A stretch of 64,000 bases of DNA from Hyphochytrium catenoides (GCA_900088475.1 FLMG01000823.1:3576-67575), one strand, 5' to 3'; counted from the first letter of the stretch, positions 2,049 to 14,717 are shown. Program-made: numbers and translations. Notes: generated by a model from the sequence alone, not told the origin.

Positions 2049-3143
2049 ATGAACACCATCACCGGTTCTCAGACGCAATCAAGTGACCTTCATCACCATC
2101 AGAAAGATCCAGACCTGGCTGGTCGTGGCCTCGCTGGACCAGAGGAGGAAGATGACATTAGAAGTGGCAGAGGAACTGGACGATGCAACTGCCCGCCAAA
2201 CCAGTGCAAATGCCCTACTACTTCTTCCGCTTCGTCGTCGTCTAACGCCCAATGCGATGTCTGTCAGCCAACTCTCGCTCGCTCCGCTGAAGGCGCGGAG
2301 AGAGGAGTGATGGAGCACATGACTGAAGAGGAGACTATCACTAGACCAGCAGTGGTAAAGGAGGTAGTCCACCACAAGCACATACATGTCATCCAGCCAG
2401 TCGTGACACGTGAGGTAGAGGTGCAGCACGTCGTGCACCACAGAGTAGTGAAGAACCAACATGAAGGAACTAGAGCCATCGATGAGGGAACCTGCAGTTG
2501 CCCTGCAGGCACGCATAACCTCGGTGAACACGCCCAATGGCTCAATTCAGGCAAAACGACTAGCGGCCTCAAGAGAAGTGGCTCCTCGTCTAGCTCTTCT
2601 TCGTCCTCCTCTGATGAAGAAGGCAGGGAAGGAAGAAGAGAGAGAGTAGGCAGAAGAAAAGACAAGACGACCACAATGGGGACTGCCGTCTCCGGAGGAG
2701 CTACTACCGGTGGCCCAACCGGCTTGGTAGGAGGAACTCACCATCAAGAAGCTCCCAGAGTGACAGGACACCATGAAGGCGCAGCTCCAACGGGTCTCAC
2801 GGGCAACCAGCCCCCAACAGCCACCAGTTCCACCGTTAGCCAAACTTCTAGCGCCTCATCTGCTGTCCCAGCCACAACCGGCACTGGACTCACTGGTATG
2901 GGCCAACAAGGTACGACGGGAACCGGCCTGACGGGGCAGCAACAACGCACTGGCTTGACTGGTTTCACTCCTGGTCATCACGCTGGCGGTACCAGCACGG
3001 GCCTGACTGGGCCACAGACGACCACAGGTACTACTGCCAGTGGCATGACGGGAGGAGGAGTACAAGGCGCTGAGACTCAACATAAGGAGAAGAGGTCATT
3101 AGGAGAGAAGATCAAGACCCTTTTTAAGGGCCATCACGAGTAA
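2049..3143 (+). CDS. Dehydrin/LEA-like hydrophilic protein, paralog 1 (364 aa, intronless)
   Basis: ATG at 2049, TAA ending at 3143. Contains GPEEEDDI, a Cys-rich insert, one HVE module (PAVVKEVVHHKHIHVIQPVVTREVEVQHVVHH), an S-segment (GLKRSGSSSSSSSSSSDEEG), a Thr/Gly-rich region and the C-terminus KRSLGEKIKTLFKGHHE. Motif conservation with three neighbouring paralogs supports coding status. The dehydrin-like label is inference. Confidence 0.85.
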   Translation: MNTITGSQTQSSDLHHHQKDPDLAGRGLAGPEEEDDIRSGRGTGRCNCPPNQCKCPTTSSASSSSNAQCDVCQPTLARSAEGAERGVMEHMTEEETITRPAVVKEVVHHKHIHVIQPVVTREVEVQHVVHHRVVKNQHEGTRAIDEGTCSCPAGTHNLGEHAQWLNSGKTTSGLKRSGSSSSSSSSSSDEEGREGRRERVGRRKDKTTTMGTAVSGGATTGGPTGLVGGTHHQEAPRVTGHHEGAAPTGLTGNQPPTATSSTVSQTSSASSAVPATTGTGLTGMGQQGTTGTGLTGQQQRTGLTGFTPGHHAGGTSTGLTGPQTTTGTTASGMTGGGVQGAETQHKEKRSLGEKIKTLFKGHHE

Positions 3144-4659
3144 TGAGAGAGAGAGAAGAAAGAAGAGAGAGAGATAAGAGAGAGAGAGAGAGAGAGAGAT
3201 GGGCTCCATTGCCCTGAAAAAAGACGAACAAAGAAGAAATGTATGATAGTTCAGCGCATCACTGGTGCCATATGTTAATTGGACAATAATCCCCATCACT
3301 GACTCATTCTTCCGCGACCCTTAGTTGTCATTGTTGGCATCTTCTATGATCTTCTTCCAATCGCTATTTTGATGTGCAGTTCCGCGCCACTACGGCGCCA
3401 CATAGAGAAGAACGTGGAGGTTACGTATCGACTGTTGGCACTCCTGAGTTAAGGTGAGGATGTCTTAGGACTTGGACAGAGGGAAGCTTTAGGATCGCCG
3501 TGTTTGCCATCGACATGCTGACAGAACTCAAAAGGAGTTCACGCTCTCTAGAGACATAATATTCGTCTTCAACCTCTATCAAAGCTAGCGCGATCGAGAG
3601 AGAGAGAGAGAGAGAAGAAGAAGACAGAGCTAGCCACGGCAGGGTAGTAGACTGTTTTCGTTATGTTATTTACTATTAGCGTGTAAATACTCAGCAGATG
3701 CTGTTGTCCCTTCTTTCAGTCTCTCGCATCGCGCAGCCCCGATAAATTCCTTCTCCCTTTCGTCTCGCACTTCTGAGCCAACCTCCATCCTCTTTAAACC
3801 CCCAGTGCCTCTTGACGACTCAATATATTGGCCCCGCTCCATCCCTTGTGGAACTTGTCCACTCTTTGCCCAGGGTAGTTACTCTGAGCACTTCTATCAC
3901 TCTCAAACGCCCATTCCTATAAGACTCGTGCATCAACCAAGAGATATAATGGTGTGGCTCTTGCGGCTTCTCGGCGCAGCACCAGGAGAACAGTGGCCGT
4001 TCGCCAGGTGACAATGTGACGGGTGTTGTCGGCTACCTATTTACACTGGCTCAAACCATCAGCGGCTCACCAATCTGACATTATTAGCACGCTCTTGCCA
4101 CATTATCGCGGCTTCAGCCTGACCGCAATGGATGATCATCAGCCGGCAAAGAAAAGCACGAACGGCGTACACAGATTAAAAAATAAGTCCAACCGCAACT
4201 GAGATCCTTGTTGATGGTACTTTATCTCCTCTGCACAGATCAGTCTATCTCTATGTGCTCTCTACTCACTTTTGCCACGTCCAGGAGGAGACATGACGCG
4301 TGGCGCTAATCGCTGTTCTCAGAGCTCCATGCAGGGGAAAGAGCCATGCATGCACCTACCCTCACAAGGCCACCGACCACTTGCTCCAGGCTGCAGCGGT
4401 GGGCCTACAGCTGCTCGCAGCGCGTCCTACTGTTCCTTGCTTATGATTGGAAGCTCGTCGTTCTCTTGGACATAAGTAATACTGAGAAAGTGGCTGAGTC
4501 CTATATGTCTGTTGGCCGTCTGGCGTTTGGACGCTAAGTGTGGGACAGCGATCAGGATTGAGGGTCGCTTTCTTCACTTTTTCCTCCTTGTTCCTTCTCT
4601 CCTTCGGCTCTGTTCCCCAACTTGGATCTTCTTCCTATGTCGCATCATGTTCGTTCATG

Positions 4660-4972
4660 AGTTCTCTCTCTCGTCTTTCTCTCTGCTCACATCCTTCTTT
4701 GTTGTCTGGCACCTTTTTCTCTTCACACACTCTCTTTCCCTCTCCCTTTCTCTCTTTCTCTCTCGCTTCACTCTTCTCTCTCACTTCACTCTTTCTCTCT
4801 CGCTTCTCTCTCTCTTTCTCTCTTTCTCTCTCGCTTCACTCTTTCTCTCTCATTTCACTCTTTCTCTCTCGCTTCTCTCTTTCTCTCTCTTTTTCTCTTT
4901 CTTGGTCTCTTCCTCTCTCTTTCTCGGTCTCTTTCTTTTTCTTTCTCTTTCTCTCTCTCTCTCTCTCTCTCA
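4660..4972. repeat. Compound (CT)-rich microsatellite / polypyrimidine tract
   Basis: About 310 bp of degenerate ctctct/tttctc units, with an internal larger unit (ctctcgcttcactct...) repeated. Confidence 0.9.
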
Positions 4973-6308
4973 ACCTTTGCAGGTGGCTCGCTCTGTCTCA
5001 CCTCTATTGTGAGATCTTTACACATCCTGTCTTCCTTCGTTCCTTCTTTTGGCCCTTTTGTACGCCTAAGAACAGGAAGTAACCTTCCTTCCTTGTCATG
5101 CAGGTCGTTACGTCCTGGATTCCGAAATTAAAAGCAACCACTCCTCTTTCAAAGAATGAAAACCGAATAAGGAAAGTCCATTGGATTCAGTTTGATTATA
5201 TGATGGTGTTGTTCTCCAGTAAAGAAAATAGCCTTCATGGCCGGAGGTAATAGTGAGGTACCGAATTGAGCCCTTTCAACAAGTTTCTGATTCTGATCTT
5301 TCTCATGTTTCTCTTGATCTTCTTCTCTTCTTCTTCCTTCGCTCTCCTCTCTCCTCTCCAGCCTTCTTTCCTGTCCTGTCCTCATCGTGTTGTTGGCCCT
5401 TGCCAGCTTTTGCACAGAAGGTAGCAGGAGCAAGAAGGAGAGGCTTCTTCCTTGCATGATGGCGTCAGCGGCAGCGACAGTCAAATGATCTTGACATGCC
5501 TCTGCTTGAGCTAGTCAAAATGAGCGATCTGAGCACTGAAGCAAGGAACATCGAGGTCAGAAGAGAGAGAGGGAAGTGCACGAACTCGCCACGTTCTTTG
5601 CTGCTCGTTCTTTCCCCTTTAGAACTTCGCCTTTCCTCCATTCTCCAGACCATTGCCTTATCCGCTGTGATCAGGCTGTCCAGCAGGTGGATCGATCTTT
5701 CTGGTCATTCCCGCAAAATTAGGTTGTCGCGTTCCTTCTTCGTTTGTCTCTATTCGCTTTCTTTGTTCACTCAGCTATGGAGAATAGTGAATAGGCAAGG
5801 AAGATGTAAGGAGAGAGTGGTAAGGCTTTATAGACGGATAATAAGAGGGAGCAACGCTGGAGAAGAGGGAATAGATCTAGGAGGAAGAAAGCGTACATAG
5901 GATGCAGCACTTCTCATTGCATTGTCGTTCATAGAACTCCATTCTGAGAAGCAGAGAAGTAACCGGCGAAAGGGCAAGAAGAAGATGCACCGACCCTTTT
6001 CCTTCTCTGGTATTCTGCCTTTGTCCCGTTCTCTTTATCCCTTTCCTTCTTGTCTATGAGCTTCTCTTTATGTCGCTCCTTATCCTGTCTTTTCTCTCGT
6101 TTCTATATATCTCTCTCTCTCTCTCTCTTTGTCTCCCTCTCTCTGCTCATACCTGTGAGCTAGCCGAAGAAGCCTACCTGTCTTCGACCAGGCAGCTGGC
6201 ACGAGCGTTCTTTCCCCTCATTATCAAACTTCCAAGCAACATCAAAGATTCAATCTTAAGCAACGATATCTACGAGCATACAGCAGACTTTTATATTATC
6301 TAAGAACC

Positions 6309-7109
6309 ATGAACGCTCTTTTCGGAAGCCGCAACGAGACCAACCAACAGAACCCCCAGGCCACCAAGGACCCAAACCTTGCCCGCGACCGGGCCGGCCC
6401 TGAGGAGGAGGATGACATCAACAGACGCCAGACTGCAGGCGTAGCAGGCACTGGCCTGGGATCTTCTACCACTGGCACTCAACAAACTAGTGGCGTGACT
6501 GGCACCCACCACACCGGCCTCCCTGGCACCCACCACGGCACTGGTACGGTGCAGCACCTCAAGGAGAGAGATGTTGTCGTAGAGCAGCCTGCAGTGGTCA
6601 ATGAGATTGTCCACGACAAGAACGTCCATGTAGTGCAGCCAGTCGTTAACAGACAGGTTGAGGTTGAGCACGTGAAGCACCATCAGGTGGAGAGGACCGA
6701 GCACGAGGGCAAGAGAGTCATTGATGAGGGACATGTAGCTGGTGCCCCTGCTGGCTACCATGGTGGAGAGAGGGGGCTGGGCAGCCGTCTGCAGAGAAAG
6801 GGCTCCTCTTCATCATCTTCTTCTGATGACGAGAAGAGGAGAACTGGCACCACCCACAGAAAGACTGGGACTACGGCTGCTGGCACTACCGGCGGCCTTA
6901 CTGGACACCACACTACCGGCACTGGCCTCACTGGTCACTCAACGACCGGCGCTACCGGCACTGGTTTGACTGGCCACCCTACCACTGGCACTACCGGCAC
7001 TGGTCTAGCTGGCCATTCTACTACCGGCACTACCGGCACCACCACCACGGAGCCACACCATAAGACCATGGGCGAGAAGATCAAGGATGTCTTCAAGGGA
7101 CATAAGTAA
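6309..7109 (+). CDS. Dehydrin/LEA-like hydrophilic protein, paralog 2 (266 aa, intronless)
   Basis: Contains GPEEEDDI, one HVE module, the S-segment LQRKGSSSSSSSDDE, (TG(T/A)TGTGLTGH)-type Gly/Thr repeats and the C-terminus HHKTMGEKIKDVFKGHK. Confidence 0.9.
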   Translation: MNALFGSRNETNQQNPQATKDPNLARDRAGPEEEDDINRRQTAGVAGTGLGSSTTGTQQTSGVTGTHHTGLPGTHHGTGTVQHLKERDVVVEQPAVVNEIVHDKNVHVVQPVVNRQVEVEHVKHHQVERTEHEGKRVIDEGHVAGAPAGYHGGERGLGSRLQRKGSSSSSSSDDEKRRTGTTHRKTGTTAAGTTGGLTGHHTTGTGLTGHSTTGATGTGLTGHPTTGTTGTGLAGHSTTGTTGTTTTEPHHKTMGEKIKDVFKGHK

Positions 7110-7537
7110 ACAGTTTAACCAGTGGACATACAGGCGGTGTACTCTGTCCAACTCTCTTCTTCCTCTTCTCTTTCTTTCCTTTTTTGACGAGCCGAGTTAT
7201 AGCCCTGCCATCTCTTTTTTTGGCGATGTCTTCCTTTCTTTTGGTCCTTTCCCAGTAGTTGTAGGACGTCTAAGGAATAACTAGCTAAATGAAGTGGCAG
7301 CATGAAGCATCTTCATCTCTTTTTACTCTCAATAGTCTGGCTCCTGTCCACATTCTCCCTCAACGCTACAGCGCGGCTGAAGCATTTGTCTGACCGAGAG
7401 GGAGTGTAGAAGACTTACCTTTAGAAGATGGTCTTTTCTTATTCTTAGCATGGACACTAGTGTTTCATGTGGGCCCTAACCTTCCACTCATCCGACAGTT
7501 GGTCGTCTCTGCTTCTTATTATCTTCTTCCTTAGATG

Positions 7538-8345
7538 CAGCCAGCACAGCTGGGCAGCTCTGCTACCTACGCATCAGCATCAGCCTATTTCTTCAGCGAT
7601 CAACCAATTTATTTCTATCTTAGAGACAAGGTCTCTATGTTCATAGCGACCGCGAAGCACCCGCTAAGCACCCGTCCTACGGCTCTACCTTAGCCAGCCG
7701 GATAGAGGGGACGTGCTGGTCCTAAATTTCATTGTTAGTAGGGGAAGGGAGTGCTAAGTCGGCCTGCATTATTAGTGACCGTCGCTGCTGTTTGTGGCGC
7801 TTTTTGCCGCGGCTGCTGCTCCATCGCGTGCAATTAGTTCATGCCCGTCTGCGGCTCTGTTTAAAAGGCCTCAGTGCTGCCATGACAGACGGCGGCATGA
7901 AAGGTCAGTCCTTACATAATAGGAGTGTTACTCTGCTTCTTTTTATATTCCTTAAAATCAGCCATAGCAGGTGGGCAGCTCTGCTTCCTACAGCACGCAT
8001 CAGCCTATCTCTTCAGCGATCAACCAGTTTATTTCCATCTTAGAGACAACGCCTCCTCCATGATCATAGCGGCGGCTAAGCAACCGTCCCCTGATGTTCG
8101 CTCGGCTCTACCTTAGCCGGCCGAGAAGAGGGGAACCTGCTGGTCCTAAATTTTATTGTTCGTAGGGGAAGAGAGTGCTAAGTCGGCCTGGATTATTAGT
8201 GACCGTCGCTGCTGTTCGTGGCGCTTTTTGCCGCGGTTGCTGCTCCATCGCGTGCCATTAGTTCATGCCCGCCTGCCATGATTAAAAGGCCCCAGTGCTG
8301 CCATGACCGGCGGCGGCATGAAAGGTCAGTCCTTACATAATAGGA
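7538..8345. repeat. Diverged tandem direct duplication, period about 420 bp (copies at about 7538-7925 and 7959-8345)
   Basis: Shared blocks include ttcagcgatcaacca, ttagagacaa (7620 and 8040), gtgctaagtcggcctg-attattagtgaccgtcgctgctgtt and ggcggcatgaaaggtcagtccttacataatagga. Confidence 0.92.
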
Positions 8346-8462
8346 CAGTCTGTCTGAGGCGGTTGGGGCGCTTTACTTGGTTCCAGCATGCTCAGCCGCA
8401 GCGCCCATGATGGCTGGAGGCCGGGAAGAAACAATGGGAGGGGAGAGTAGAAAGAAGAGGAC

Positions 8463-8570
8463 GAAGAGAGAGAGGACAGAGCGAGAGAAAGAAGGAGAGC
8501 GAGAGACAGACACACACACACAGAGAGAGAGACACAGAGAGAGAGAGACACACACAGAGAGAGAGAGACG

Positions 8571-8611
<41 letters not shown>

Positions 8612-8720
8612 ACAGAGAGAGAGAGAGTGAGAGAGAGAGAGAGAGAGAGACAGAGACAGAGAGAGAGAGACACACACAGAGAGAGAGAATGAGAGAGAGA
8701 AGAGAGAGAGAGAGAGAGAT
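8463..8720. repeat. Compound (GA)n/(CA)n microsatellite
   Basis: Directly visible. Confidence 0.95.
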
Positions 8721-9658
8721 GGGGGAAGAATAGAAGAGCGCTTGCCAATCCCTTTGTAGGGGAGGAGTGGCAAGATGAGGAGACAAAAGCCCAAATTCAT
8801 CCTAGAGTATGGAAGAAATACGAATTGGAAAAGAACAATTTCCGAGTTTAGTAGTCTAGAGGGTTACATAATAACTATTGGAGTCGAGAGCAAGATGTTT
8901 TTCTCGAATACAAAAGGCTCTGACCGATAAGAGCGGTCCTCATGCGGCGAACAGCAGGTGAACAAAGAGGAGCGGGTCTCGCAGCAGGAGTGAGAGGCCT
9001 CACAGTGTACATACAGCGGCCTCTGTCTTCTCTTCCTTCTTCTGCGTGCTCCATGCTCTTCTCCTTCTCCTGTAGGCAGCAGGCTGCTGCTGCGTGGTGG
9101 CTCCCTTTGACTCTCCTGCTACTGATCCCTTGCATGGCTATTCTTTCTTCTTCTCTTCTTCTTCCTCTGTTGCCAAGTGCGAAGAGAAGGTGGGTGGTTA
9201 CCTGGCTCAACCAGCTCCTCTTCTTCTTGGGACAGTAACGTTCAGCGCTTCCAATGCTTCTGCTGAATCTTTTTGTTCTTCGATGACATCAGGGAATGTG
9301 CAGTGGATGAAGAGACAAGAGAGAGAAAGTGTCAGGTGTAGTTCACTGACTAGCTTAGGAACTTCCCAGCCCACATTATCCAGCTCCAAGAGGGGAGAAT
9401 TCTCTGCTGCACTTCTATGAGGCTTCTTCTTTTCCTTGGTCTTTGTACCTACGAATGCTTGCTCTTCTCCCACTCCCAGAGCTTCCTTTTTGACATACCA
9501 GGGTCCTTGACTTTCTTAGGACTAGTCCTAGCCTGCACTTCTCCTTAAAAAGTAGGAACGGCAAGGTTGGAAAGAAGGATGGAGGCATCGCCCGACCCCC
9601 AGCTGTTTTTCCCAGGCCACTCACTGCCTTAATTATAGGAAAAGGGTTCGCAGGATGT

Positions 9659-9693
<35 letters not shown>

Positions 9694-9713
9694 CTCTCTC
9701 TCTCTTCTCTCTC
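9659..9713. repeat. (CT)n/poly-T microsatellite
   Basis: Directly visible. Confidence 0.9.
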
Positions 9714-10088
9714 ATGTTACCCAGTATCACTCTTTTCGTTCTTCATTCTGTTTGCCCTTTTATCTCCCACCCATAACTTGTAGGCCTCGAGAATCTAGAG
9801 ATCTTCCCTCTCCCTGGCTAGGCCCTCTCATGGTGGTAGCAAGAACTCTTATCTGAGAGCCTCCTTCTGTCCCTCTAAGCTGCCTCCTATCCTCATCCTT
9901 CTCACCGAAGCTGCGCTTCACAATAAAATCTTCAGCAAACGCCGAAAGAAGAGCAAAAGTATCGACATAACAACGCTTTCCTTGTCTCATCTGAGGTTCT
10001 CTGCTTCTTTTCTCCTTTGTGTTGTCTGAGCATCTGGCATACTCATCGACTAGAACTTTGTGGGCCGAAGAAGTGTAAGCGGGAAGCA

Positions 10089-12548
10089 ATGGATACTCTC
10101 TCTCAGTCATCGGCTAGGAATAGCTCCAATGCCGCGTCCTGCTCTTGTGCCAACCCGCTCCCTGAGCAGCAGTGCTGCCGAGGGAATAAGCAGCAGGAGA
10201 GAGCTGAATGTTCTGCCCCAGAGGAGGAAGAGGACATTATGAAGCTTGAGAAACGAATGAAGAACGTCGTAGAGCTCACAGCCGCAGACAACATTGCCCA
10301 GAAGACGGTAGAACACGTGCATGAGGCGGTCCAGATCATAGAGAAACCGCCCATAGTCCACGATATCATCCACGACAAGACCATTCACATTGTGGAGCCT
10401 ATTATCAACAAGGAGGTGGAGGTCGAGCATATCAAGCATCACACCGTGGAGAAAGAAGAGTTCGGAGGAAAGAGAAGAGTGGATGAAGGACAGAGCTCTG
10501 TGGCTCCTGAAGGATACACTATCTCTGAGCAGGCTCTACGATCCGGCGAGGCCCACAAGAATGTCTCCCATGTGAGAGAGAAGGACGAGCGGAAGCATCA
10601 AGTGCCTATCGTTAACACACTTGTCAAAGAAAGAGACGTCCACGTGGTCCAGCCGATCGTTAACAAGGAGAGAGAAGTAGAGCACGTCAAGCATCACACT
10701 GTGGAGAGAGAGGAATATGGGGGAAAGAGAAGAGTTCAAGAAGGAGAGAGCAGGACCGCTCCTGCTGGCTACCAGATCTCGAAAGAGGCAATTGCACAAG
10801 GAGAGCAGCACAAGAATGTGTCTCATGTTGGAGCAAGAGAGGAGCTTCGAGAGCAAGCCCCAATCATCAACAAGTTCGTGCACGAGAGAGATGTACATAT
10901 GGTCCAGCCTATTATCAACAAAGAGAGAGAGGTGGAGCACGTTAAGCATCACACTGTGGAGAGAGAAGAATACGGAGGAAAGAGAAGAGTGGATGAAGGG
11001 GAGAGCAGAGTGGCTCCTCAGGGCTATACTATCTCTGAGCAGGCCATCAGAGAAGGAGAGGCACACAAGAATGTCTCTCACGTCGCAGAAAGCCGGGAGC
11101 TAAAGGAGCAAGCCCCTATTATCAACAAGCTTGTGAGAGAGAGAGACGTGCATATGGTCCAGCCTATTATCAACAAAGAGAGAGAAGTGGAGCACGTCAA
11201 GCACCACACAGTGGAGAGAGAGGAAAGCGGAGGAAAGAGGAGAGTGGACGAAGGCGAGAGCAGAATGGCTCCCCAGGGATATGCTATCTCAGAGCAAGCT
11301 CTGCGGGCTGGAGAGGCGCACAAGAATGTCTCTCATGTGGGCGTGAGGGAGGAGCTCAGAGAACAAGCTCCTGTTGTTAACCAGCTTGTGCGGGAGAGGG
11401 ACGTCCACATGGTCCAACCAATCATCAACAAAGAGAGAGAAGTGGAGCACGTCAAGCATCACACAGTGGAGAGAGAGGAAAGCGGAGAAAAGAGGAGAGT
11501 AGACGAAGGCGAGAGCAGAATGGCTCCCCAGGGATATGCTATCTCAGAGCAAGCTCTGCGGGCTGGAGAGGCGCACAAGAATGTCTCTCATGTGGGTGTG
11601 AGGGAGGAGCTCAGAGAACAAGCTCCTGTTGTTAACCAGCTTGTGCGAGAGAGGGACGTCCACATGGTCCAACCAATCATCAACAGAGAGAGAGAAGTGG
11701 AACACCTCAAGCATCACACGGTGGAGAGTGAAGAGTTCGCAGGAAAGCGAAGAGTGGACGAGGGAGAGAGTGGAGTCGCTCCTGCTGGCTACCAGATATC
11801 CCAACAAGCAATAGCACAGGGAGAGACACACAAAGATATCTCTCACGTGCGTGGGGGCAACGCTCTGAGAGTGCAGCCAGCGGTGGTAAATCAGGAGGTA
11901 CATGAAAGAGACGTCCATATGGTCCAGCCAGTGATCAATAGAGAGAGAGACGTCGAGCATATCCAGCACCACACCGTGGAAAAAGGAACAAGGGGGGAGA
12001 AGAGAGTGGTTGATGAAGGCACCACAGCGTCGGCTCCTGCCGGGTACAAGCTGAGTGAGAAGGCCTTGAGAGAGGGAGAAGCGCACAAGAACGTACAAGT
12101 TCAAAGAGAGAAAGACGCAGTCCAAGAGAGAGAGGCAGCAGTAAACCAGATTGTCCACGAGAGAGACGTCCACGTCGTCCAGCCCGTTGTCAACAAAGAG
12201 AGATACGTGGAGCACGTCTTCAGGCACAGGGTGGATGAGACCGAGCATGGTGGCAAGAAGGTGGTAGATGAGGGATATGTGGCTGGTGCTCCGGCAGGTT
12301 ACCGGATGGGAGAAGAAAGACATCAAGGAGGTTTGCGAAGGAGAGGTTCTTCCTCATCTTCGTCTTCTTCCTCTAGCTCGTCGTCTGACGATGAGAGTAC
12401 GGCCAGGACGGGATACCGTACCAAGAGGAGTAGTGGGACGACGACGGGCACTACTACTGGCAGTCAGAGCACCGTAGAGAGTGATAGCACCGTGCCGAAG
12501 AAGTCTCTAGGACAAAAAATCAAAGGAGTATTCAAGGGCCATCACTAA
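10089..12548 (+). CDS. Dehydrin/LEA-like protein, paralog 3 (819 aa, intronless), with eight 85-aa His/Val/Glu-rich repeats
   Basis: First ATG at 10089 in an 843-codon open frame. Contains a Cys-rich N-terminus, APEEEEDI, eight repeats, the S-segment GLRRRGSSSSSSSSSSSSSDDE and the C-terminus KKSLGQKIKGVFKGHH. Confidence 0.92.
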   Translation: MDTLSQSSARNSSNAASCSCANPLPEQQCCRGNKQQERAECSAPEEEEDIMKLEKRMKNVVELTAADNIAQKTVEHVHEAVQIIEKPPIVHDIIHDKTIHIVEPIINKEVEVEHIKHHTVEKEEFGGKRRVDEGQSSVAPEGYTISEQALRSGEAHKNVSHVREKDERKHQVPIVNTLVKERDVHVVQPIVNKEREVEHVKHHTVEREEYGGKRRVQEGESRTAPAGYQISKEAIAQGEQHKNVSHVGAREELREQAPIINKFVHERDVHMVQPIINKEREVEHVKHHTVEREEYGGKRRVDEGESRVAPQGYTISEQAIREGEAHKNVSHVAESRELKEQAPIINKLVRERDVHMVQPIINKEREVEHVKHHTVEREESGGKRRVDEGESRMAPQGYAISEQALRAGEAHKNVSHVGVREELREQAPVVNQLVRERDVHMVQPIINKEREVEHVKHHTVEREESGEKRRVDEGESRMAPQGYAISEQALRAGEAHKNVSHVGVREELREQAPVVNQLVRERDVHMVQPIINREREVEHLKHHTVESEEFAGKRRVDEGESGVAPAGYQISQQAIAQGETHKDISHVRGGNALRVQPAVVNQEVHERDVHMVQPVINRERDVEHIQHHTVEKGTRGEKRVVDEGTTASAPAGYKLSEKALREGEAHKNVQVQREKDAVQEREAAVNQIVHERDVHVVQPVVNKERYVEHVFRHRVDETEHGGKKVVDEGYVAGAPAGYRMGEERHQGGLRRRGSSSSSSSSSSSSSDDESTARTGYRTKRSSGTTTGTTTGSQSTVESDSTVPKKSLGQKIKGVFKGHH
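10311..12305 (+). repeat. Coding tandem repeat, 255-bp unit, about 8 copies
   Basis: The Glu codon of the VEH motif recurs at 10425, 10680, 10935, 11190, 11445, 11700, 11955 and 12210, an exact 255-bp spacing. Confidence 0.97.
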
Positions 12549-14147
12549 GCAGCCGGAAGTAAGGGATAAAAGTTAGTTGACCTAAGTCACAGATGTCACT
12601 ATTAAAAATCATTGACTAGTGTTGCCTATGTACCAGCTTCGGAGCTTGCCTTCATTGTTATAGGTTACTTGGCGAGGCATAAGGGATGGCACTGTTGAGA
12701 CTTCTTTGTCCATGGCTTAGAGACCTACCTGACCGTGGGTAAAGAAAGGATGATTGTTGTGTGAAGAGAAGAGAATACGGCTGTTATAAAGCAATCATCA
12801 GAAGCAGAGCTCTTAGCTGATGATCTTCACCACCACTTACAGCAGACCCTTCTGCGTTAGTACCGCCGTTCTTTAGTTCACTCTGTGCTTCATCCTGAAC
12901 TCACGGTGGCTGCAACGAAGTAACCCACTGCTGCGGAAGAGGAGAAGATGAATGAACCGGTACCTCCACTGCTGCGGCGCTGTGACGGCTTGGTGGGCTG
13001 CTGGGCCATCATAGCATCAAGGCCCGACAGAACCTGCTTCCCTCCAACGATGGAGTGTACTTCTCCCTAGGGAGAGACATAGAGACATAGAGAACACTAG
13101 CTTCTCAAGCAGTTGTTGGTCTAGAGTTTCCTGCGAGGAGTTCTACCAAGAAGAGAATCATCATCATCAACGCCCTGAAAGGGGCGATTGTAGAGAAGAA
13201 CGAACACAAGTACAGGTACAGTAAGTACTACTACTTCTTTCACAAGTACAAGTACTTGTACCTACACAAGCAAGTGAAAGACGACAATTCTCAATTTGTA
13301 CTAGTAAATTCTGGTTCTTGGCCTCTCATCTTCTTCCCAGCAACCCTCCTTATGCACCGCCTGCTGTGCCCCTTGTACGCCAGAAAGGAAGAAGATCTTA
13401 CGAACCGCTGCGCTCGAAGTTTTGCTTCTTCCCTGCTGCTGGTGCTCTTCGTCCCTCGCTGCTCGGTAAGGGTGTTCTCTTTCTCCTCTCTAGTTCTTCT
13501 CGTACATGTGCAAAGGGCTCAAAGAAGAGTGGCAGCAGCGGTGGTAGTAATGAGTTGTACCTCTATGGCTTTGGATTGTTGTTATTTGCTCTGTCATCCC
13601 TCATCATACATAAGAGCCTTATTATACAAAAAGGACTCAAGCTTGTTTGACGACGAGCCCATGAGAGCACGGCTAGCTTTTTATGTTGTTAGGAAGAAGC
13701 TAGGGGGAGAAGAGACAACTATCCAGTCAATGTGCTTGCTTAGCCCTAAGCGGCTGCCTGTTTATTCTTCTCACCCTTCAACAAAAGCTTACGTTTTTCT
13801 GACTAACCTTCGTGCCAGGAAAAGTGCCTCAGCTTTCAATAAAAGCTGGTTCTCATTAGGTTTCATAAATGGTCTTTCTTTGCTTCTTTTCCTAACCCCG
13901 ACCCTCCTGTCCTCCACAATGTTCTGTACTCCTGCGGGACTGTAAGTTCTGAGCTCTCGTTGTTCTTGACAATCCTGGTGGTGAGAGCACACAAGAAAAC
14001 TGCTGCCAGTTTCCGTTCTGCCAGATATCTCACAGACGACCACAGCTCCTAGTAAGAGCATTCAAGTCCGAGAGGAGAGAGAAAGAGGACTGCAGCAGCG
14101 ATATATCTTTTGAACCAACTGGTGCCCGGTCGTTCAGCGATCACACC

Positions 14148-14717
14148 ATGTCGTCCTACCAGAGTAACACCGTTATGGGATCAGCCCAGCAAGAAGGCAG
14201 CCGCCCGGTCGCCAGCGGTACTTACGCTGCAGACCCGCTCAGTCAGCAAGGGGTGGAGAACGTTCAAGGAAGAGATAGATATCAAAAGGGCGAAAGGCAA
14301 ATGGATACAAGAGGTCCGGAGGAGGAAGAAGACATTATAAGGCGGCAACAGGGCGGCCTTCCAGGAGTGCAAGAAGGAGACATCGTAGTGGAGAAGCCTG
14401 CAGCTGTCAGGGAAGAGGTACATGAAAAAAATGTCCACGTTGTGCAGCCAGTAGTCCACCGCCAGCAGGAGGTGGAGCATGTGCAGCATCACACAGTGGA
14501 GAGCAGGGAAAACCTGGGAAAGGAGGTGGTGGAAGAGGAAGGCCAAAGGGGCCTCACCCATGGCTCTACGGCGCCTCCAACCGGAGGGCCGATGGGAAGA
14601 GAGGCGGCGAGCGTCGGGCCAACGACGGAGGAGCATCACGAGAAGAAGACAATGGGAGAGAAGATAAAGGATGTCTTCAAGGGAGGTCGCCATAAGGAGA
14701 AAGGCCAGCACCCTTAA
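14148..14717 (+). CDS. Dehydrin/LEA-like hydrophilic protein, paralog 4 (189 aa, intronless, no S-segment)
   Basis: Contains GPEEEEDI, one HVE module (PAAVREEVHEKNVHVVQPVVHRQQEVEHVQHHTVE) and HHEKKTMGEKIKDVFKGG near the C-terminus. Confidence 0.88.
   Translation: MSSYQSNTVMGSAQQEGSRPVASGTYAADPLSQQGVENVQGRDRYQKGERQMDTRGPEEEEDIIRRQQGGLPGVQEGDIVVEKPAAVREEVHEKNVHVVQPVVHRQQEVEHVQHHTVESRENLGKEVVEEEGQRGLTHGSTAPPTGGPMGREAASVGPTTEEHHEKKTMGEKIKDVFKGGRHKEKGQHP

Follow-up and report, generated by a model that had tools for sequence, protein, structure and literature searches.

A tandem cluster of four genes for putative dehydrin-like hydrophilins in a probable stramenopile

Introduction

Four hydrophilic genes lying in tandem between positions 2049 and 14717 of a 64,000-nucleotide stretch of the Hyphochytrium catenoides assembly (GCA_900088475.1, FLMG01000823.1:3576-67575; the whole stretch is called the window here) raise the question whether the segment layout of dehydrins can occur outside plants. 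Dehydrins have been reviewed as a plant family, genomic searches having found none even in algae (PMC10358736), and what has been called dehydrin-like in other organisms consists of immunological cross-reactions or of fungal DPR proteins without S- and K-segments (PMC10358736, PMC1550403). An original prediction, made from the DNA alone, had proposed the four genes as an undescribed protective family which joins dehydrin segments to a module rich in histidine, valine and glutamate (the His/Val/Glu module). The follow-up reported here finds a coherent paralogous set for which the literature searched holds no description. With somewhat better than even confidence the cluster is read as encoding soluble, disordered, histidine-rich hydrophilins, lineage-restricted chimeras which would act like dehydrins or late embryogenesis abundant (LEA) proteins, the protective function being proposed by analogy. 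The class which seems to fit them best is a new dehydrin-like hydrophilin variant in a probable stramenopile.

Four paralogues with a common layout

The four open reading frames were recovered on one strand at the positions predicted, with lengths counted from the first ATG.

2049 to 3143, plus strand: gene 1, 364 residues; in order PEEEDDI, a cysteine-rich stretch, one His/Val/Glu module, CxCPxGTHxxGEHxxW, S-segment, a long Gly/Thr/Ser linker and a K-like C-terminus
6309 to 7109, plus strand: gene 2, 266 residues; PEEEDDI, one module, S-segment, 13-residue repeats of the TGTGLTGH type, K-like C-terminus
10089 to 12548, plus strand: gene 3, 819 residues; PEEEEDI, eight 85-residue His/Val/Glu units, S-segment with 13 serines, a short linker, K-like C-terminus
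14148 to 14717, plus strand: gene 4, the minimal member, 189 residues; PEEEEDI, one module and the K-like segment, with no S-segment

The individual elements lie as follows.

2139 to 2159 (gene 1, PEEEDDI), 6399 to 6419 (gene 2), 10218 to 10238 (gene 3) and 14316 to 14336 (gene 4), plus strand: PEEE(D/E)DI motifs, located by regular expression and as DNA repeat family D16
2334 to 2459, plus strand: His/Val/Glu core of gene 1, 42 residues, repeat family D4
6576 to 6701, plus strand: His/Val/Glu core of gene 2, where the variant sites of RNA contigs fall nearly all on third codon positions
10302 to 12341, plus strand: array of eight 255-nucleotide units within gene 3, repeat families D1 and D4
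14385 to 14510, plus strand: His/Val/Glu core of gene 4, repeat family D4
2568 to 2621, plus strand: S-segment of gene 1, LKRSG-Ser10-DEE followed by GREGRR
6789 to 6833, plus strand: S-segment of gene 2, LQRKG-Ser7-DDE
12333 to 12395, plus strand: S-segment of gene 3, LRRRG-Ser13-DDE
3090 to 3131, plus strand: K-like segment of gene 1, repeat family D12 and regular expression
7059 to 7100, plus strand: K-like segment of gene 2, repeat family D12
12498 to 12539, plus strand: K-like segment of gene 3, regular expression
14643 to 14684, plus strand: K-like segment of gene 4, regular expression; the sole element predicted as structured by AlphaFold2

Regular expressions and DNA-repeat scans agree on this layout. 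PEEE[DE]DI is present once in each protein, the module core in 1, 1, 8 and 1 copies in genes 1 to 4 with a spacing of exactly 255 nucleotides (85 residues) in gene 3, and [KH][KR][ST][LM]G[EQ]KIKxxFKG in all four proteins, 2-10 residues before the C-terminus. The DNA repeat families mirror the protein units, D4 (11 copies) corresponding to the module core, D12 to the K-like end and D16 to PEEEDDI. To this extent the predicted modular grammar stands in all four genes, but the segment L-x-R-x-G-Ser(7-13)-D/E occurs in genes 1-3 and not in gene 4, in which the Gly/Thr linker is almost absent as well. None of the family motifs was found elsewhere in the window in all six frames, and tblastn detected no extra or decayed family copies there. 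The four genes are old tandem paralogues, because protein identity amounts to only 25-57% over the aligned parts and the synonymous sites between module cores are saturated.

Transcription, introns and selection

Gene 2 was found in soil, plant and rhizosphere metatranscriptomes as well as in small single-organism RNA runs. The contigs assembled from these data and placed on positions 5400-7900 cover one interval only, leaving short untranslated regions on both ends and silent flanks.

6242 to 7247, plus strand: RNA contigs over gene 2, colinear, extending about 67 nucleotides 5' and about 140 nucleotides 3' of the reading frame

The coding region of gene 2 has no intron, and the joints seen in its RNA contigs are repeat-number variants only: the 39-nucleotide (13-residue) TGTGLTGH repeats at 6894-7040 differ in copy number among the window, the RNA contigs and the metagenomic relatives P0001-P0003, which is allelic variation. 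The absence of introns, claimed for all four genes, is thus borne out for gene 2 and indirectly for the gene-1 type, of which an orthologue-like relative (P0006) is available as a complete transcript contig. For H. catenoides 3.64 introns per gene have been reported (PMC5795050), in keeping with the fragmented genome, rich in introns, to which the window belongs. Within the reading frame of gene 2, 29 of 32 variant sites of the RNA contigs fall on third codon positions, and when adjacent units of the gene 3 array are compared, the ratio of nonsynonymous to synonymous divergence comes to 0.08-0.27. Gene 3 is weakly present in a few RNA runs, with 5-8% of the sampled words. The genes are real and under purifying selection, and gene 2 is transcribed. 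A non-plant host, as originally supposed, is very probable, a land plant being unlikely given the distribution in soil metatranscriptomes.

Composition and predicted structure

The grand average of hydropathy of the four proteins ranges from -0.81 to -1.15, confirming the predicted hydrophilicity, with 6.8-16.2% glycine and 6-8% histidine. All four thus combine more than 6% glycine with strongly negative hydropathy, the combination by which Garay-Arroyo defined hydrophilins (glycine above 6%, high hydrophilicity; cited in PMC1550403). None of them contains a hydrophobic N-terminus, signal peptide or transmembrane segment, the highest hydropathy over 15 residues staying below 0.8. Cysteine and tryptophan are lacking in genes 2 and 4, while gene 1 encodes 8 cysteines and 1 tryptophan and gene 3 encodes 5 cysteines. 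Pairs of adjacent histidines number 2-8 per protein. Gene 1 in addition carries two Cys/His stretches, CNCPPNQCKCP and CxCPxGTHxxGEHxxW (2184-2216 and 2493-2540), which were not seen in the other paralogues and are a candidate metal site; the latter motif occurs three times in the gene-1 relative P0006.

AlphaFold2, run on gene 4 with the family alignment, yielded a mean predicted local distance difference test score (pLDDT) of 54 and a lone helix at residues 169-177, coinciding with the K-like segment (block pLDDT about 74). The module of gene 4 reached 60-68 with no secondary structure, and two repeat units of gene 3 had a mean of 35, both input alignments being shallow. The beta-rich nature ascribed to the module beforehand found no counterpart in these models, none of which gave it a confident fold. 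The helical hydrophobic moment of the K-like segments reaches 0.46-0.54, as compared to about 0.28 in shuffled versions. A sequence search of the PDB with the family profile yielded no relative. The proteins are predicted to be intrinsically disordered apart from the K-like helix.

The C-terminal half and plant dehydrins

A profile restricted to the tail (A3; S-segment through C-terminus) was searched in a database of 5.8 billion proteins. Its first matches from outside the family are four proteins of the Pfam Dehydrin family (PF00257) at 36, 32, 31 and 28 bits, two of which (P0015, P0016) are grass dehydrins of the YSK2 type with textbook Y-, S- and K-segments. The alignment with P0015 spans LHRSG-Ser7-DEDD to the terminal EKKGIMDKIKEKLPGQH and scores 32.4 bits, as compared to 3.6 for the reversed and -13.6 +/- 3.4 for shuffled sequences. 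In the opposite direction, the Pfam Dehydrin profile, with a gathering cut-off of 30.6 bits, matches the relative P0006 at 27.1 bits (E 6.5e-6, profile positions 53-154) and the relative P0005 at 14.8 bits. When the tail profile was split, the S part scored 19-22 bits on the grass dehydrins (10-12 when reversed) and the part comprising linker (the phi region) and K-like segment 5-7 bits (controls -9 to -18), so that the tail matches dehydrins mainly through its S-segment.

The published dehydrin patterns (PMC1550403, PMC10358736) were applied to both segments. For the K-segment these are the PROSITE pattern [KR]-[LIM]-K-[DE]-K-[LIM]-P-G and the core (D/E)KIK(D/E)K; the family matches a K core only in the relaxed form [DEQ]KIK[DEGT]. 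For the S-segment they are LHR(S/T)G-Ser(4-6)-(S/D/E)(D/E)3 and PROSITE S(5)-[DE]-x-[DE]-G-x(1,2)-G-x(0,1)-[KR](4). Genes 1-3 have L-[QKR]-R-[SKR]-G-Ser(7-13)-D/E(3) and gene 4 has none, the segment being optional in dehydrins, and gene 1 is one residue short of the PROSITE pattern (RRER where four lysines or arginines are required). Patterns for the Y- and F-segments do not match any of the four window proteins. P0014 with RKKGLGEKLKEKIG and P0007/P0017 with KKSLLQKIEDKIMPG, all of them metagenomic, show intermediate forms of the K-like segment, and since these proteins score 22-36 bits on the phi and K profile alone, a chain of similarity from the K-like segment to plant K-segments is possible. 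A link from plant K-segments to the K-like segment may be provided by the gene at 4975-6903 of locus L006, a fungal-looking split gene (intron near 5904-6000) with QPLYDERTE-type modules, a poly-Ser/acidic segment, four copies of RKKG(L/F)GEKxKE and a faint Pfam Dehydrin match.

In common with plant dehydrins of the SKn and YnSKn types (PF00257) the family has an S-segment with an L-x-R-x-G prefix and an acidic suffix, a phi region rich in Gly, Thr and His which in family and plant proteins alike contains TGxGxTG-like repeats, a terminal lysine-rich amphipathic segment that has KIK at its core and Gly-His after it, the order of the segments, predicted disorder, hydrophilin composition and richness in histidine. 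It differs in the K consensus (KIKDVFKG as compared to KIKEKLPG in plants), in the absence of Y- and F-segments, in the cysteines of two members and in its probably stramenopile host. The N-terminal half with PEEEDDI and the His/Val/Glu module is absent from plant dehydrins, as had been stated at the outset for the module. By its sequence the tail has a dehydrin-like layout, in which the S-segment is convincing, the linker similar in composition and the K-like end divergent, and it is at most a putative member of PF00257.

The His/Val/Glu module

Searched separately, the 42-residue core aligns with a tandem repeat, xPAhhxExV...hQPhhxRE...HH, of the proteins P0009-P0012 (hhalign probability 96.7%, E 3e-10); scored with the family profile in the exhaustive run, these proteins reach 35-41 bits. 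These QPV(I/V)xRE repeat proteins share the module of about 40 residues (xPAhhxExVxxxxhxxhQPhhxRE...HH), often in tandem, but contain neither PEEEDDI nor the S-phi-K tail. Because the repeats match in proteins which have no dehydrin tail, the module, judged by these alignments, belongs to a wider class of uncharacterised repeats and is not an invention of the cluster. Pfam gave no match above its cut-offs on the four window proteins and nothing meaningful on P0008-P0012. In ESM Atlas features both module sets are nearest to unnamed or "Allergen"-named fungal clusters with no Pfam family, at scores of 0.79 or less that serve as a lead only; for the QPV(I/V)xRE proteins the clusters are mostly from Ascomycota and Basidiomycota, a fungal attribution which derives from weak feature scores (0.79) alone. 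Positions of His, Pro, Val and Glu are invariant across all copies of the module. As the module is tightly conserved and the linker variable, a specific interaction is suggested, which may be metal binding, self-association or contact with a partner.

Distribution of the family

The family profile was scored against all 1.84 billion representative proteins at a threshold of E<=0.001 and yielded 8 matches: the close relatives P0001 (gene-2 type) and P0006 (gene-1 type), the distant relative P0008, the module-only proteins P0009-P0012 and 1 low-complexity sequence. No plant dehydrin was among them with the whole-family profile. P0008 has the module, S-segment, linker and K-like end and lacks PEEEDDI. 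The word-indexed set of 5.8 billion proteins adds P0002-P0005, all on contigs of about 1 kb and with 92-59% identity to gene 2; over P0001-P0005 this identity runs from 94 to 59%. With the module alone the word-indexed search recovered the close family only. Metagenome contigs of JGI contain only two further loci, 1.1-kb and transcript-like, and no relatives were found in IMG/VR viral contigs or in bacterial and archaeal genomes. The exact gene 2 product has no record in the assemblies index. Judged by these searches, the family is lineage-restricted and very rare.

The gene of P0008 lies at 10001-10678 on the JGI contig Ga0395899_0000383 (L005; 52.8 kb, 41% GC), which carries dense, long, intronless reading frames on both strands, almost none of them with Pfam matches, and has no match in IMG/VR. 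The contig may come from a giant virus or else from a eukaryote with a compact genome.

Other chimeras and known non-plant systems

Tails of this type are attached to other N-terminal halves in the metagenomic proteins P0007/P0017 and P0014, which have precomputed Pfam Dehydrin hits. Like the window proteins they consist of Val-rich repeats followed by a poly-Ser/acidic segment, a TGTGLTG-type linker and a K-like end, but the N-terminal repeat of P0007/P0017 is of their own, alveolin-like VPV type, and P0014 is set apart by an intron and by several K-like segments in its interior. A second type of chimera is represented by the transcript-sized contigs of L001 and P0007/P0017, in which alveolin-like Val/Pro repeats are combined with an S-segment, a TGTGLTG linker and the end KKSLLQKIEDK[IL]MPGH.

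The fungal dehydrin-like proteins TbDHN1, DprA/B/C, DlpA and AbDhn1-3, for which there is genetic evidence for a role in the tolerance of oxidative and osmotic stress, cold and heat (PMC1550403, PMC3103405, PMC3788798), are likewise non-plant, Gly/Ser/Thr-rich disordered hydrophilins with repeated modules. They lack the S and K patterns (PMC1550403), in contrast to the S-segment and K-like segment of the window family. The fungal DPR family was ruled out as a classification, its signature [GRK]-[PV]-H-x-[ST]-x(3)-N-h-h-D-P-[RTP]-V-D-[SN] (PMC1550403) and the core DP[RTP]VD being absent in all family members.

The oocyst cluster TgLEA850-880 of Toxoplasma gondii confers resistance to salt, freezing and drying (PMC10128015) and, like the present locus, comprises four tandem genes for disordered LEA-like proteins of a microbial eukaryote. 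It differs in being LEA class 6-like, with amphipathic Ala- or Trp-rich repeats of 22-29 residues (delimited by WW in LEA860) and one signal peptide, whereas the window proteins contain 0-1 tryptophan and no such repeats and are rich in Gly, Thr, His, Val and Glu. A relation to the Toxoplasma cluster, suggested by CT/GA microsatellites and four tandem hydrophilic genes, was rejected, as repeat types and composition differ and no motifs are shared (PMC10128015).

A possible mechanism

The N-terminal half, made of acidic PEEE(D/E)DI and one or eight His/Val/Glu modules, is joined to a C-terminal half with the layout of an SK-type dehydrin, in which a poly-Ser/acidic S-segment of putative CK2 type is followed by a flexible linker of Gly, Thr and His and, at the terminus, by a lysine-rich amphipathic segment. 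The proteins would be unfolded in hydrated cells, and upon water loss, freezing or salt the K-like segment might become a helix coating membranes or proteins. The linker may serve as hydrated spacer and metal binder, and the abundant histidines may bind metal ions. Phosphorylation of the S-segment, probably of the CK2 type, could tune ion binding or localisation and would be lacking in the minimal gene 4. To this the module would contribute specific binding or a function in self-association and assembly, which is multiplied in gene 3. The host, probably the stramenopile H. catenoides, a saprotroph of soil and pollen, would have to survive drying. The words dehydrin, late embryogenesis and desiccation do not occur in the text of its genome paper (PMC5795050).

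Competing explanations

Several observations weigh against the reading as hydrophilins which act like dehydrins. While the order of the segments is that of dehydrins, as the original prediction would have it, and the nearest outsiders of the tail profile are Pfam dehydrins, the window proteins do not reach the Pfam Dehydrin cut-off, the best of them being gene 4 with 11.5 bits and genes 1-3 having no match. The PROSITE K pattern and the (D/E)KIK(D/E)K core, each of which matches P0015 and P0016 twice, are found in none of the four, and neither are the strict and the PROSITE S patterns. Taken by itself, the K-like profile is negative on the grass dehydrins (-5.4 and -7.7 bits), most of the tail score comes from the poly-Ser/acidic run, and proteins with nothing more than an S-segment reach 27 bits. 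The cysteines in genes 1 and 3 and the tryptophan in gene 1 are unusual among dehydrins. Tight conservation of the module is atypical for a purely entropic disordered protein and may mean another function. For genes 3 and 4 the signs of expression are weak or absent.

One rival is convergence, in which the serine cluster, the linker and the basic end arose independently in low-complexity sequence and share no ancestry with plant dehydrins, though such proteins may still protect. We regard this as a serious contender whose chances fall a little short of even. It accounts for the uneven scores along the tail, where 19-22 of about 32 bits stem from the S part and 5-7 from phi and K together, the K-like end alone being negative, for the failure of the PROSITE patterns, for the score of unrelated S-segment-only proteins and for the lack of matches to plant dehydrins among the 1.84 billion representatives at E<=0.001. 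It accounts less well for the common succession of three segment types, at whose far C-terminal end the K-like segment is followed by Gly-His as in the grass proteins, for the shared flanks of the S-segment (L-x-R-x-G before it, and D/E-G-x-x-G-R-R after it in gene 1), for the drop of about 29 bits in reversed controls and for the intermediate K-like forms in P0014 and P0007. In a more far-reaching reading the proteins are genuinely homologous to plant dehydrins although their host lies outside the green lineage, an SK-type tail having been captured by a stramenopile, by gene transfer from a plant or fungus or from a much older shared ancestor, fused to the His/Val/Glu module and amplified to a four-gene stress locus, which is considered rather unlikely. 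The version by horizontal transfer, from a plant directly or via a fungus into a resident His/Val/Glu gene which was then duplicated in tandem, is held to be similarly doubtful. The collinear end-to-end alignment with grass YSK2 dehydrins speaks for it, as do the isolation of the probable host from pine pollen and the occurrence of the module alone in other microbial proteins and of the tail with other N-terminal modules (P0007/P0017, P0014), as expected from domain shuffling. The scores are low, though, the divergence of the K-segment exceeds what the family patterns admit, no particular donor stands out and such sequence does not lend itself to a tree; any transfer would have to be old, because the codon-level divergence of the paralogues is saturated.

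Two further explanations start from the N-terminal half and the histidines. The proteins might be structural or scaffold components, their Val-rich repeats forming filaments or a resistant layer of the articulin/alveolin or spore-coat CotD type with the tail as a solubilising or regulatory appendage. Conservation of the module far above the rest of the protein, its eightfold presence in gene 3 and the joining of a tail of this type to an alveolin-like Val/Pro repeat in P0007/P0017 point in this direction; Atlas features place module proteins near CotD, DUF2382 and IMCp clusters, but at weak scores (0.5-0.6) far below a meaningful level. With no signal peptide, strong overall hydrophilicity and AlphaFold2 models which show neither a confident fold nor beta structure, such a role is unlikely. 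Still less probable is a primary function as buffers or metallochaperones for Zn, Cu or Ni, acting through the histidine pairs and the CxC...H...H...W motif of gene 1. It draws on the histidine content and the number of such pairs, on the invariant histidine positions in every module and on the threefold Cys/His motif of P0006, but no known metal-binding family was matched in Pfam, and binding of metals would be compatible with a dehydrin-like role, as plant dehydrins bind metals through histidine (PMC10358736). A family of disordered hydrophilins acting like dehydrins or LEA proteins stands as the preferred reading.

Surroundings of the cluster

On its left the cluster is bordered by the end of a gene for a HECT ubiquitin ligase, whose C-terminal lobe is encoded at 42-395 and whose other part lies past the window start. 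Long (GA)n/(CT)n microsatellites lie in every spacer of the cluster (394-472, 1318-1438, 3145-3199, 4730-4971, 6071-6139, 8465-8719 and 9659-9713), one of which contains a 29-N assembly gap at 1347-1375. The spacer of genes 2 and 3 carries a tandem duplication of about 420 bp at 7512-8356, with five co-linear repeat pairs of 76-93% identity. No shared promoter motif was found, as the 700 bp upstream of each of the four genes have no k-mer of length 7 or above in common, and an Rfam scan of the whole window gave no match.

Significance

The locus provides a sequence-defined family with an S-phi-K layout in a probable stramenopile, with gene 2 transcribed in soil and plant-associated samples and with signs of purifying selection. 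It also flags an unannotated, conserved repeat module common to many uncharacterised microbial proteins. Its practical value is modest and lies in candidate protectants of enzymes or cells in drying and freezing. Natural variants, such as the member with no S-segment and those with one as compared to eight modules, allow the role of each segment to be dissected. With this family it can be tested in a manageable system whether the layout of dehydrins arose repeatedly or passed from one kingdom to another, and if its members were true homologues of plant dehydrins, the segment grammar of dehydrins would be a mobile cassette across eukaryotic kingdoms.

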